NCBI GenBank assembly: GCA_964036045.1
Contig: OZ038379.1
Span: 14,136,001 to 14,200,000, forward strand
Direction: 5' to 3'
From: Eutreptiella sp. 'Long Island Sound 2002'
Taxonomy: Eukaryota; Protista; Euglenida
DNA length: 64,000 bases
The position numbers and the translations under genes were made by a program. Of the stretch, positions 1,699-32,350 are shown in pieces (position 1 is the stretch's first letter; the number at the start of each line of letters is the position of its first letter). A model generated the notes under the pieces. It was given only the letters and a program-made list of their open reading frames with translations, had not been told where the DNA came from and did no database searches.

Positions 1699-1896
1699 AC
1701 ACCACGCAACACAACACGGCACAATACAACACAACACAACCCAATGCAACACAACACAACACAACACAACGTAACACAACACAACACAGCACAGCACAAC
1801 ACAACACAACACAACACAACACAACACAACACAACACAACACAACACAACACAACACAACACAACACAGCAGAGCACAGCACAACAGAGCACAACA
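1699..1896 (+). repeat. (CACAA)n pentanucleotide microsatellite, 5' flank of LINE-B
   Basis: Direct reading; minor CACAG/CGCAA variants. Confidence 0.97.
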
Positions 1897-4800
1897 GGAC
1901 CAACGGACATACTACCAGGGAGTCCTGCAGGTGGACGTCCCAGACCGCAAAATTCAGCACGGGTCAACGACCCCCAGCCCCTACACTCGCCCACTCCGGC
2001 AGCCGCGGCCCGACACGTAGGCCACGTGTGGGCAACGGATAGCCCGGAGCAACGGGAGGAGGCGTTGGCCGAAGCCCCGGAGATCCGGCCCTCCCGGCTT
2101 CTCTGCTATATGGGGACGGACATCTACCTCCAAGGCACACCCACGGCCCCCCGAAACCTACCGGAGGTCAGGGCGGCGGTCTGGAAGCAGCTCCGCCCCC
2201 AGCAACTCCCCCCGGACGCGGCCATGATGGTGCTCATGGCAAAGCTCCCGAGAAAACTGCTCCCCCTGGCCAGCGTCTACCGCCCCACGGCCCAGGTGCA
2301 CGCGGCCAACGACGCCCTGATGGTGCGGGCATACAAGTACATGGCAGGAATCTCCCGCCATGCCCACACCGAAGCACTCTGGGGGCCCTGGGAGCATGGA
2401 TGCCAGGGTTTGACCCGGTCCTCACACTCGTGGCAGACTGCGGTCACCCGGGAATGGGTCCGGCAGGGGGCCTGGGCTAAGGAGGACTTCCGAGAGTCCC
2501 AAACCTACACCCTCCAGGCACACCAAGCGCTCAGAGGGGGGTGCCCAGTGGTGCTCACCCCAGGGCAGTACACCCACCACCCGAGGTGCTCACCTCGTCG
2601 CTACGCTGCAGCGGGTAGTGGATGAAGTGTCCATGCCCATGTGGATGCCGGCCCCCTGCTCAGGGACGACCCCCATCCTGGTGCGGGGGCCTGGCGGATC
2701 TCGGGCAGGGGCGGCAGCGGCCCCCACCCCCCAGGTGGAGGTGTACCCGACCCAGTACGGCGATATCGTGCAGGTAGTCATCCCCCCGACCGTCCACGAA
2801 ACGGTGCACGAAACGGTGCAGGCTCTGGGATACCACCACCCGGGAGACTTGTACATAGAAGACCACCGCATCAAAGGGGAACGGGCCCTTAAAGAGCGGG
2901 CGCAAGCCCGCAAGGGTATCCCCGGCCTACGGGCATGGTTGGCCCGCCATGGCGCCGTCCCGGCGCCCCTACTGCGGGTGCCCCCGCCGCGGTGGCAGAC
3001 TGCGCCTAAGGGCTGGATCCCGGGCGCCGTGCCCGCATACCCGGCGGAAGTGGTCATCAGGGGCCGGGTGGCCAAGACCACTCGGATGGAGACCGTGTAC
3101 CACGGGGGCTATCCAATCAAGGTGACGACAGCCATGAAGGATGCCATGCATGGAGGCCAAAGACTGGACGCCGGAGCTCCGGGTGTGCTGCTAGCCCCCA
3201 AACACGCTGCCAAGCGACACCCGATTAAACCGTCTCGTGGTTGCCCTTCTGGGCGTCCAAGTGCAGGTCAACGTGCCCCTGCATGCCCAACTATGGGACG
3301 ACCATCACCATGTGTCCCTAGGCCAGCTACAGAGCGCGGGGGTATGGGCACCTACCATTGTGTGGATGTCCGAGCCTCCGGCAGACGCCTACTGGCAATG
3401 GGCCCAGGCATCGCCGGCCCCTCTGTCACCGTCACCACAACACTGTCGCTGTGGCCATGGATAGCCATTGCCCCGGCTGCGGTGGCTAAGTCCAAGTACC
3501 CCGCGGAGTGTGTGGCGCACAAGTGCCCAGGGCACCCGAATAAGGGGCCCCTCTACTACTCGCTCGGTACAGCGGGAACAGTACCGGCAGAGCTCGGCCC
3601 TGCCCTGCGAACCCACCTCCGTGAACACCATGGTGACCTGGCTCTCCTGGCGCCACACGGCCTGGCTACCGACCCCCCACAAGTACTAGCCCCCGAGGTC
3701 AAGCCGGGCATTTGGTTCCATGACCTACCGGCGCTGGCGACTCTCCGCGGAACCGTGGCCACGGTGGATGCCGGAACCACGCAGGCAGGCATGGCTATGG
3801 CAGGGGTCGCCCAAAGCGGGCCTGAGGCCTACCGGACCCACGTGGCCTCCGGGGTAGGCACCTCCCAAGAGGGGGAGGCCATGATACTCCTCTCATACAT
3901 CCGCAGGCTGGCGCAACAGCCAGGGGTATTTTGGCTGGTGCCGGACTCAGAGGCGGCGGTGGGGGCCTTCCGCACGTATCAAGAAGGAGGCCATTGTGGG
4001 GATGGTATACACCACCTCTACGCCACTGTCTTGGGAGGCCAACACCTCTCCCCTACCTCAGCCATCAACGTGGTTACCACGCCGTCGCACTGGATAACAT
4101 ACCTGAACGTCCGTGTTGATGCAGCGATGCAGGAGCCGCCAGAGGTAGACCTGACGTGGCTCCTCCGGCGCCCTTTCTCCTTCCTCTCCCCGGTAACTTA
4201 CCGGGACCAATGCCAACTCTCCCCAACGGCGTTGAGCAACTGGTTACAAGACCGGGCCTCCATACCGGCGCGGGCCGGCTATGAGGCCCGATGGGGGGCA
4301 AACTACACATCGGGGAGTGGATTCCCCCTCGACTGGTTCGATGGCGACCAACAGCGCCACATCACGGCGCACCGCATGGACAACATCCCCACGATGACTG
4401 TCTTGGCGCACCGGTCTTCCCACCGGGACACGGTGCTAGACACCACGTGCCTCCTCTGTGGAGCACAGCCCGAAACGGCACCCCACCTTTGGGCCTGCTC
4501 GGCCCAGTCCCATGAGTGGGGACCGGCTCGCCAGCGGCTCACGGAGTGGCTTGACCAGAAGGTGGGGAAACGGGTTGCCTCGGTGCGCCACCAGCTGTGG
4601 GAGCCGACTGTACTGGAGCAGTGGGCGGCGGCCTTGCGTACCCCCTCCATGCAGCGAGCCCACATGGAGTGCTCACGGCCCCACACGCTGGGGACGGAGT
4701 TCATCCGTCACGTAATCGAGGAGTCCATCATAGTCTGGTACGCCCACACCAAGGCGCGTGCCACGTTGCTGAAAGCCCGCCTGGGCCCACGTTGCTGAAA

Positions 4801-5067
4801 GCCCGCCTGGGCCCAGGCATCACAATGGCGTGGGTGTTGCAGGAGCTACGCCTGCACCAGCAGGTGGAGAGAGAGGGAGTATAGCGGGAACTTCTGGGAT
4901 GACAACTGTCGCCAGGAGGGTGACATCCAGGTGTCCCCGGCTCCCCCTCTTCACAGCGATAACCACACACTTGCACACGGCGCGCGCGCTACACACACAG
5001 CCCTCCCGTTTACCTGTACCCGTGGGTAGACATCCCGGCCATTTCCTTCTGGTAACAGCGCCTTCGG
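1897..5067 (+). mobile_element. 5'-truncated non-LTR retrotransposon (LINE-B) inserted in (CACAA)n
   Basis: Begins in the late RT/thumb region (LLCYMGTDIY; ALWGPWEHGCQGL resembles LINE-A MLWASIDDLGF). Continues into RNase H-like and Cys-His motifs. Ends GGTAACAGCGCCTTCGG followed directly by (CACAA)n. Confidence 0.85.
2618..4798 (+). pseudogene. LINE-B ORF2 C-terminal part: RNase H-like domain and CX2C...HX3C knuckle, frameshifted
   Basis: Acidic RNase H residues in VATVDAG / SQEGEAM / LVPDSEAA / NVRVDAAM. CLLCGAQPETAPHLWAC is typical of LINE C-termini. Frame break near 2620 and a 26-bp duplication at 4762-4813. Confidence 0.8.
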
Positions 5068-30154: not shown

Positions 30155-31195
30155 GTATGTGGCAGCGAGCACAAGGAGCTGGCACCGTACCAGTTCTCCA
30201 GACACGCACGGGATTTTTGACGAGGTACGATCGAATTCTCGGAGAGTTCTTTTTTTTTTTTTTTTTTTAGGCAGCAAGCACAAGGAGCTGGCACCGTACC
30301 AGTTCTCCAGACACGCACACGCATGGGATTTTTGACGAGGCATGATTGAAGTCTCGGAGAGTTCTTTCTTTTCATCAGAATTTATGAGGCAGCAGGCACA
30401 AGGAGCTGGCACCGTACCAGTTCTCCAGACACGCACGGGATTTCTGACGCGGCACGATTTATGTCTCGGAGAGTTTTTTGTTATCATCAGAATGTATGGG
30501 GCAGCAAGCACAAGGAGCTGGCACCGTACCAGTTCTCCAGACACGCACGGGATTTTTGACAAGGCACGATTGAATTCTCGGAGAGTTCTTTGTTTTCATT
30601 AGGAGTTATGATGCAGCAAGCACAAGGAGCTGGCACCGTACCAGTTCTCCAGACACGCATACGCACGGGATTTTTGACGAGGCATGATCGAATTCTCGGA
30701 GAGTTCTTTCTTTTCATCAGAATTTATGGGGCAGCAGGCACAAGGAGCTGGCACCGTACCAGTTCTCCAGACACGCACGGGATTTCTGATGAGGCACGAT
30801 TTATGTCTCGGAGAGTTTTTTCTTATCATCAGAATGTATGAGGCAGCAAGCACTAGGAGCTGGCACCGTGCCAGTTCTCCTGACGCGCACAGGATGTTTG
30901 ATAAGGCACGATTAATTGTACGGAGAGTTCTTTCTTTTCATCAGATATTATGAGGCAGCAAGCACAGGGGGCTGGTACAGAACTGGTTCTCCTTATATGC
31001 ACGAAATCTTAGGATATGATCGAAATTCTCTGAGATTTGGGGGCTTGGAATGTGTTCTCTGAGAGTTTTTGTTGTCATCAGGAATCATATGGCAGCAGGT
31101 ACGTGATGGTAACATACTTTTGTGGTGATCGATTGCACTTATTAACAAGCACATGGAGCTGGCACCGAATCAGTTCTCCGGCATGCATGGAGAGT
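30155..31195 (-). repeat. LINE-A 5' tandem monomers (about 112 bp, 8-9 copies, with an about 342-bp higher-order trimer); putative internal promoter
   Basis: GGAGCTGGCACC at about 30175, 30284, 30403, 30515, 30626, 30745, 30856 and 31156, plus a variant near 30968. Confidence 0.9.
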
Positions 31196-31408
31196 TGAAT
31201 GCAACTGAGAGATAACTAAACAGTACCTTACCATACGAGGAGAGATTATGGCTCCACCGGTTTTCTGCACACACCGCTCGCAACTTTGAGCGATTGCCCC
31301 ACCGGCGCCAGGAGCCATACTTGGGCCGGCCTGACGGGAAGTGGCAGGAACAACAGGACAGTCCACAGACAACAACTGCCATTGGACTGCCCCCCGCCAC
31401 CCCCAGTT

Positions 31409-32350
31409 GTGTGTGTGTGTGTGTGTGTCTGTGTGTGTGTGTGTGTGTGTGTGTGTATGTGTGTGTGTGTGTGTGTGTGTCTGTGTGTGTGTGTGTGTGT
31501 GTGTATGTGTGTGTGTGTGTGTGTGTGTGTGTGTGTGTGTGTGTGTGTGTGTGTGTGTGTGTGTGTGTGTGTGTGTGTGTGTGTGTGTGTGTGTGTGTGT
31601 GTGTGTGTGTGTGTGTGTGTGTGTGTGTGTGTGTGTGTGTGTGTGTGTGTGTGTGTGTGTGTGTGTGTGTGTGTGTGTGTGTGTGTCTGTGTGTGTGTGT
31701 GTGTGTGTGTGTGTGTGTGTGTGTGTGTGTGTGTGTGTGTGTGTGTGTGTGTGTGTGTGTGTGTGTGTGTGTGTGTCTGTGTGTGTGTGTGTGTGTGTGT
31801 GTGTGTGTGTCTGTGTGTGTGTGTGTGTGTGTGTGTGTATGTGTGTGTGTGTGTGTGTGTGTCTGTGTGTGTGTGTGTGTGTGTGTGTGTGTATGTGTAT
31901 GTGTGTGTGTGTGTGTGTGTGTGTGTGTGTATGTGTGTGTGTGTGTGTGTGTGTGTGTGTGTGTGTGTGTGTGTGTGTGTGTGTGTGTGTGTGTGTGTGT
32001 GTGTGTGTGTGTGTGTGTGTGTGTGTGTGTGTGTGTGTGTGTCTGTGTGTGTGTGTGTGTGTGTGTGTGTGTGTGTGTGTGTGTGTGTGTGTGTGTGTGT
32101 GTGTGTGTGTGTGTGTGTGTGTGTGTGTGTGTGTGTGTGTGTGTGTGTGTGTGTCTGTGTGTGTGTGTGTGTGTGTGTGTGTGTGTGTGTGTGTGCGTGT
32201 GCGTGTGTGTGTGTGTGTGTGTGTGTGTGTGTCTGTGTGTGTGTGTGTGTGTGTGTGTGTATGTGTGTGTGTGTGTGTGTGTGTCTGTGTGTGTGTGTGT
32301 GTGTGTGTGTGTATGTGTATGTGTGTGTGTGTGTGTGTGTGTGTGTGTGT
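31409..32350 (+). repeat. (GT)n microsatellite, 5' flank of LINE-A
   Basis: Direct reading. Confidence 0.98.

Follow-up and report, generated by a model that had tools for sequence, protein, structure and literature searches.

Several animal long interspersed nuclear elements (LINEs) of the apurinic/apyrimidinic endonuclease (APE) type insert specifically into microsatellites: Waldo into (ACAY)n, Mino into (AC)n, Kibi into (TC)n, Koshi into (TTC)n and Dong into (TAA)n (PMC3812793). Here we describe two LINE families, LINE-A and LINE-B, that occur in a 64,000-nucleotide stretch of the genome of the euglenid Eutreptiella sp. ‘Long Island Sound 2002’ (assembly GCA_964036045.1, contig OZ038379.1; G000:C2:14136001-14200000 in our notation), hereafter the window, and that were traced through the assembly of 2.28 Gb in 2,317 contigs. 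LINE-A and LINE-B are probably target-specific retrotransposons without long terminal repeats that integrate into pre-existing CA-rich microsatellites, (CA)n in the case of LINE-A and CACAN arrays in that of LINE-B. Most copies of both have the same repeat on both sides, in one orientation, with the element strand always reading CA-rich.

Mino (MinoAg1) and Waldo are insect APE-type LINEs found in (AC)n and (ACAY)n (PMC3812793). The likeness is that of an APE-type LINE between CA-type microsatellites in a single orientation, and their CA/ACAY target class overlaps the motifs of both LINE-A and LINE-B. They are, however, R1-clade animal elements of ordinary size, whereas LINE-A measures 15.8 kb and has two ORF1-like genes (ORF, open reading frame), an RNase H and an ORF2 that the Pfam model RVT_1 does not recognise. 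Kibi and Koshi, fish LINEs of the Tx1 group found in (TC)n and (TTC)n (PMC3812793), offer a parallel for related families with different microsatellite targets and for an APE endonuclease of the L1/Tx1 kind; their motifs and hosts are different, and the comparison is one of descriptions only.

The Chlamys Penelope-like elements of Chlamydomonas target (C)n microsatellites (PMC9977147, citing Craig et al. 2021). They too are microsatellite-seeking retroelements of a unicellular eukaryote, with mostly intronic and often 5′-truncated insertions, but they are not LINEs, having a GIY-YIG endonuclease and a telomerase-like reverse transcriptase (RT). The Euglena gracilis assembly is reported to contain 1.49% LINE and ~33% unknown repeats, with target specificity unmentioned (PMC11252322), and literature searches returned no description of microsatellite-specific LINEs in euglenids. 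The behaviour reported here is already known from target-specific APE-type LINEs; the novelty lies in the families, which are highly divergent.

LINE-A is present in the window as a full-length 15.8-kb copy on the minus strand (15579–31407), recognised by its APE, RT and RNase H regions. The initial annotation placed it between (CA)n arrays, and this is borne out: a tandem-repeat scan delimits (CA)n on the element strand at its 3′ flank (14957–15578, reading (GT)n in the window and confirmed in the sequence) and at its 5′ flank (31408–32351, reading (TG)n in the window, with unique DNA beyond). The 5′ terminus is fixed at window position 31407 and reads ACTGGGGGTGG (also written ACTGGGGG); the 3′ untranslated region (UTR) terminates in (CAATAA)3 at 15579, the number of CAATAA units ranging from 3 to 5 among copies. 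From the 5′ end onwards, and all on the minus strand, the element contains 112-bp repeats (30156–30975), a second, upstream ORF (28029–30095), a relic ORF2 C-terminus (25874–26573), an ORF1b of 863 amino acids (22780–25371) that lies upstream of ORF2, and ORF2 itself, of 1,800 amino acids (17314–22716). The first ~70 nucleotides of LINE-A (window 31336–31404, minus strand) form a long GC-rich hairpin in prediction, at -44 kcal/mol over the 90 nucleotides folded (z = -2.8). We considered a ribozyme like that of hepatitis delta virus (HDV) at this end and rejected it: no Rfam family matched the hairpin, HDV-family covariance models had no match at E ≤ 10 in window 31100–31450, and the first 72 nucleotides fold as a plain long hairpin and not as a nested double pseudoknot.

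ORF2 of LINE-A carries an APE endonuclease and an RT, the latter with a YSDD motif. The window copy of ORF2 has a weak Pfam Exo_endo_phos match and none to Pfam RVT_1. An exhaustive HMMER search recovered 551 relatives, of which the full-length ones pass the Exo_endo_phos cut-off and one of these has a weak RVT_1 match. When compared with the PDB, a family profile built from 14 sequences reached chains of the L1 endonuclease and of ORF2p (E = 5e-11 to 1e-10) as well as reverse transcriptases of R2 (E = 8e-7, about 1e-6). The same profile reached no R1Bm or TRAS1 endonuclease chain at E ≤ 1, a difference from the R1 clade that is a hint and not a phylogenetic placement. Downstream of the RT, a structure model of ORF2 residues 1250–1440 (predicted local distance difference test score (pLDDT) 90.6) gave archaeal and bacterial RNase H1 as the best Foldseek matches (E = 4.6e-6, TM up to 0.76 by target); the predicted domain has invariant D, E, D and H residues and is followed by a conserved CCHC motif. 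LINE-A can therefore be classed, on this model, as an RNase H-bearing LINE with a predicted RNase H fold downstream of its RT.

Genome-wide, all 30 of the LINE-A 3′ ends that were fetched directly adjoin (CA)n or a CA-derived variant, and all 30 fetched 5′ ends begin at the identical base with a CA-type array immediately upstream in the same orientation (the junction samples for LINE-A and LINE-B consist of the best-scoring or first-listed copies). The flanking arrays are 125 to >1,500 bp long, the median being at least 550 bp downstream of the 3′ end and, where the length of retrieved sequence capped the measurement, at least 1,100 bp upstream of the 5′ end. Past the arrays the DNA differs at most loci, the next LINE-A being present downstream in 1 of 28 cases and upstream in 3 of 30. 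Perfect (CA)15 occurs at 548,301 positions, amounting to ~1.1 Mb or ~0.05% of the 2.28 Gb, so that chance cannot account for an array at 30 of 30 junctions; the association exceeds microsatellite density as measured by this perfect-(CA)15 figure. LINE-A copies are 96–99% identical and spread over many chromosomes, and at other loci their 5′ and 3′ ends lie 15.4–16 kb apart, which shows that the whole unit transposes.

We compared the arrays on the two sides of the same LINE-A copy by their non-CA 6-mers, in 15 pairs of which 12 were informative. Variant composition agreed far better within copies than between them (mean cosine 0.68 for matched and 0.29 for unmatched pairs; permutation p = 0.0003 for the 12 informative pairs). 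Copy-specific variants found on both sides included CACCC, CACG, CACACG and CACACAA, one per copy. Locus-specific variants on both sides of a 15.8-kb insert are expected if a pre-existing array was split, and not if the arrays were tails or had been inherited; by this comparison, the repeat flanking LINE-A is its target and not a tail borne by the element.

These data also bear on the explanation that the upstream (CA)n belongs to the transposed LINE-A unit, with transcripts that start in or before the array; the element would then bring both arrays along, and it might insert at arbitrary targets. It would fit with nearly all sampled LINE-A copies being full length, and with the lack of a 5′ array in the truncated copies L017 and L085. 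Inherited arrays do not, however, predict variants that are specific to the locus and yet common to both sides; array lengths vary over the range given above, and one of the three truncated LINE-A copies, that in L026, directly adjoins (CA)n at its 5′ side. We regard this explanation as quite unlikely.

Neither tblastn nor hhalign profile comparison detects similarity between LINE-B and LINE-A, and the initial proposal of several unrelated microsatellite-aiming LINEs in this genome is upheld to the extent of at least two mutually unalignable families. The window copy of LINE-B (1897–5067, plus strand), delimited from the sequence and its relatives, is 5′-truncated just after the RT active-site motif and has the 3′ terminus ...GGTAACAGCGCCTTCGG. 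It follows an (ACAAC)n array found by Tandem Repeats Finder (TRF) at 1696–1896 (plus strand), in an intron just past an ion-channel exon. It has one ORF (2618–4798, plus strand), with an RNase H-like stretch of the pattern D..E..D..H and, at the C-terminus, a Cys/His knuckle. The upstream continuation through the ...MWVDD... RT motif is present in 17 of 20 relatives. A degenerate copy on C6 reaches at least 6 kb further upstream, with a pentamer array and then ~46-bp monomers at its start.

Pfam found no domain in LINE-B. Its assignment as an RT-bearing element draws on the MWVDD motif and on a language-model look-alike search, in which the N-terminal part of a longer copy grouped with eukaryotic clusters, some of whose members carry RVT_1. 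For the RNase H-like stretch, the structure model was unusable (pLDDT 34.5) and hhalign was not significant. The earlier description of these LINEs as RNase H-bearing accordingly stands for LINE-A, with its well-scored model and Foldseek matches, and amounts in LINE-B to the D..E..D..H pattern.

The exact 15-mer at the LINE-B 3′ end occurs at 2,415 places in the genome, against 0 for a reversed control. Among the first 100 of the 2,415 listed, ~58 continue into (CACAC)n, 13 into (CACAA)n, 7 into (CACAT)n, 2 into (CA)n and 10 into mixed pentamers, with no repeat in 10; ~85–90% of these 3′ ends enter CACAN pentamer arrays, although the search pattern excluded G as the last letter and non-repeat flanks are under-sampled by about a quarter. 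This tally makes the LINE-B array one of a CACAN class, in which the (CACAA)n of the window is a minority type. LINE-B had been assigned to (CACAA)n; the window arrays and a second 3′ end there agree with that, and it is as a (CACAA)n specialist that the assignment fails.

At the 5′ side, BLAST mapping used a composite LINE-B joined from L088 and the window copy as its subject; a 15-mer anchor for LINE-B 5′ termini yielded no usable sample, as it sits in a repeated monomer. CACAN arrays adjoin 9–11 of 13 separate 5′ junctions, namely those of the window copy, L065, L069, L086, L095, L099, L102 and two full-length starts on C6, with L062 and L097 as weak cases situated within the very short tail of a LINE-B upstream of them. 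Most 5′-truncated LINE-B copies, too, have the repeat directly at their 5′ end. Five of the six copies readable at both ends carry a single motif on the two sides, and four motifs are represented among them: (CACAA)n in two copies and, in one copy each, (CACAC)n, (CACAG)n accompanied by CACGG variants, and a mixture of CACAC and CACCG. The sixth is discordant, with (CACAA)n opposite (CAACG)n. For LINE-B as for LINE-A, the flanking repeat is the target and not an element-borne tail. We also observed that L097 (G000:C4:159263057-159263207) has an inverted 5′ LINE-B segment directly after the 10-bp tail of another LINE-B, resembling the 5′ inversions that arise by L1 twin priming.

In the window, LINE-B heads a stack (1696–8956) of three insertions in the same orientation, set apart by four blocks of (CACAA)n, all features lying on the plus strand. 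After the LINE-B copy comes a (CACAA)n array (5068–5292, TRF), then a 47-bp minisatellite (5293–6254) akin to the ~46-bp monomers at the full-length LINE-B 5′ end, a second LINE-B 3′ end fragment (~6255–6583) and another (CACAA)n array (6584–6713, TRF). The third insertion (6714–8534) consists of short units and a 20-bp minisatellite and is followed by (AACAC)n, the same motif as (CACAA)n (8535–8956, TRF). From its sequence, the 47-bp minisatellite probably forms the head of an element that derives from LINE-B and has suffered an internal deletion. We rejected it as a LINE-B target, given that LINE-B sequence and tail lie only on its 3′ side and that the full-length copy starts with related monomers. 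The third insertion terminates in a 148-bp module (8390–8535) sharing 82% identity with the 3′ UTR of LINE-A (15642–15787 or, by another placement, 15621–15766), and its terminal 15-mer has no second exact match in the genome. This short composite with an (AACAC)n tail may represent either a non-autonomous partner or a sister family that uses a different type of array.

We infer that insertion into such arrays would begin with the element endonuclease (APE-type in LINE-A) nicking that strand of the array which is rich in G and T. The 3′ end released by the nick would then pair with a stretch resembling the array at the 3′ terminus of the element RNA, so priming reverse transcription, and the array would be split into two halves that retain the same local motif variant. 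Repeated hits on one array would yield co-oriented stacks, such as that at window 1696–8956.

Several observations count against integration into pre-existing arrays. The truncated LINE-A copies L017 and L085 (the latter a copy from a European Nucleotide Archive (ENA) assembly) have non-repeat 5′ flanks, leaving a (CA)n-adjoining 5′ side in 1 of 3 truncated copies; the L085 flank resembles another repeat, and a later insertion there is possible. Two of the 13 LINE-B 5′ junctions, L087 (with a (TACC)4 flank) and L096, are without a CACAN array. No LINE-B endonuclease was found by Pfam and PDB searches with six-frame pieces of the degenerate full-length copy. Some loci are duplicates rather than separate insertions (L049/L050, L056/L057 and L038/L039 for LINE-A, L089 for LINE-B), the junction samples fall short of a full census, and no empty site, target-site duplication or transcript was seen, the evidence being assembled DNA.

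The duplicates speak for a passive history, in which elements insert anywhere, survive only in repeat-rich regions and are spread as element-plus-array blocks by segmental or tandem duplication. Clear instances are L049/L050, L056/L057 and the higher-order units of L089, and copies also cluster at 15–22 kb spacing. Yet every copy has arrays in direct contact with its two terminal bases, the outer DNA and the array variants differ at most loci, and the 96–99% identical copies lie on many chromosomes. This history is likewise improbable and ranks after the travelling of both arrays with the element. Least probable of all, and by our reckoning very much so, is random integration with arrays as mere 3′ tails that the elements make or bring with them, through slippage or templating, which would account for an array at every 3′ end and for its absence from the 5′ side of two truncated LINE-A and two LINE-B copies, but not for same-type, same-orientation arrays at the 5′ side of 30 of 30 full-length LINE-A and 9–11 of 13 LINE-B junctions or for variant motifs that agree across each copy and differ among loci. 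The initial annotation had named non-microsatellite 5′ flanks in most copies as the sign of such tails; the 5′ flanks are microsatellites in all 30 full-length LINE-A and in most truncated LINE-B copies. Integration of LINE-A and LINE-B into arrays that were already there is thus the reading that we favour.

Head-to-tail LINE-A clusters with 15–22 kb spacing were seen in G000 at C14:13.39-13.47 Mb, C3:80.70-80.83 Mb, C7:12.4-15.4 Mb and C18:22.34-22.38 Mb. On C7, some neighbouring LINE-A copies are in opposite orientation and have near-identical flanks, which suggests large duplications. A head-to-tail LINE-B cluster on C1 (L089) was rejected as a case of repeated independent hits: its identical imperfect tails and equal spacing mark a tandemly duplicated higher-order unit, and clusters alone are therefore no proof of repeated hits.

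Further families extend the association beyond LINE-A and LINE-B. P0035 and P0037 are distant relatives of LINE-A ORF2 (25–29% identity) from the ENA assembly, which also contains a 98% identical LINE-A as well as copies of LINE-B and is evidently from the same organism. A P0037 family copy has (TGGGTG)n on both sides and terminates in (CCTGA)4. The P0035 family is represented by two tandem copies, each terminating in (CCCTGA)2-3 and then followed by a 30-bp TGG-rich minisatellite. Six exact P0037 5′ anchors in G000 have (TGTGGG)n, (TG)n or (TGAG)n upstream in 3 of 6 and non-repeat sequence in the other 3, of which two resemble longer variants. With P0037 beside several repeat types, the repeat type differs between families, yet at least one family is not strict in its choice. 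The proposal that these LINEs partition their targets by repeat motif is accordingly right about the difference between families and too strict about its sharpness, as P0037 lies beside (TGGGTG)n, (TG)n and (TGAG)n. Relatives from other samples (L084, L111 and L112) have flanks that are too short or poly(A)-ended and are uninformative on the target.

A short tandem ‘adapter’ stands just before the array in three LINE families: (CAATAA)3 at window 15579–15600, (CCTGA)4 at L110:12555-12575 and (CCCTGA)2-3 at L109:11995-12015. One could picture a guild of at least four very divergent LINE families that share integration into tandem repeats through a 3′ ‘adapter’ and array-pairing, with repeated integration and tail synthesis as a main builder of the unusually long micro- and minisatellite arrays of this genome, intronic ones included. 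We consider this broader scheme doubtful, if less so than the alternatives to targeted integration discussed above.

Two other juxtapositions that had been offered as retroelement–microsatellite pairs were rejected. The first concerns a dispersed-repeat fragment followed by (GTCTC)n (11705–12095, plus strand), with a second copy and the same imperfect array at 13487–13663. The repeat, of ~90–175 bp, lies at 11705–11797 and 13487–13573 with (GTCTC)n next to it both times, and since both carry the same imperfect array letter for letter, the pair is one locally duplicated event. Among ~200 exact genomic anchors of this 175-bp repeat, most copies run on into sequence other than (GTCTC)n; it is a dispersed repeat usually found without that array. 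The second concerns the intronic (GTGTA)n array at 12099–12687 (plus strand, TRF), earlier given as (ACACT)n beside a unique segment, which adjoins 12688 onward. The abutment is present, but no retroelement end was found beside the array, and segment 12688–12842 is host intron DNA without retroelement features, occurring at three genomic places at 99% identity (C2 and two on C6) in a duplicated gene region.

The first 14 kb of the window fall within the introns of a cation-channel gene with several domains. In the window ORF scan, the ORFs at 1306–2625 and 9840–11120 match Pfam Ion_trans, and exons of this voltage-gated cation-channel-like gene lie at 1306–1690, about 10900–11120 and about 12843–13440, the last being a clear exon; its introns house the microsatellite/LINE stack. 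A 41–42-bp minisatellite family is found at window 40877–41389 and, on the opposite strand, at L110:15542-15992, where in the ENA assembly it adjoins a LINE of another family. At 58890–60560, a 99-bp unit repeated ~8 times (98% matches) sits between inverted blocks of CGGCCGGCCG-rich 28–41-bp repeats, which makes a symmetrical structure.

LINEs that seek out microsatellites have been documented mainly from animals. If our reading of LINE-A and LINE-B is true, the ‘safe haven’ strategy either originated or survived at a great distance from animals, in several families that are abundant and recently active, to judge by the 96–99% identity of LINE-A copies and the more than 2,400 LINE-B ends. The two would provide natural endonuclease/RT pairs with simple, different targets, (CA)n and CACAN, for studies of how a target is read, and they would account in part for how laden with repeats the introns of this genome are.

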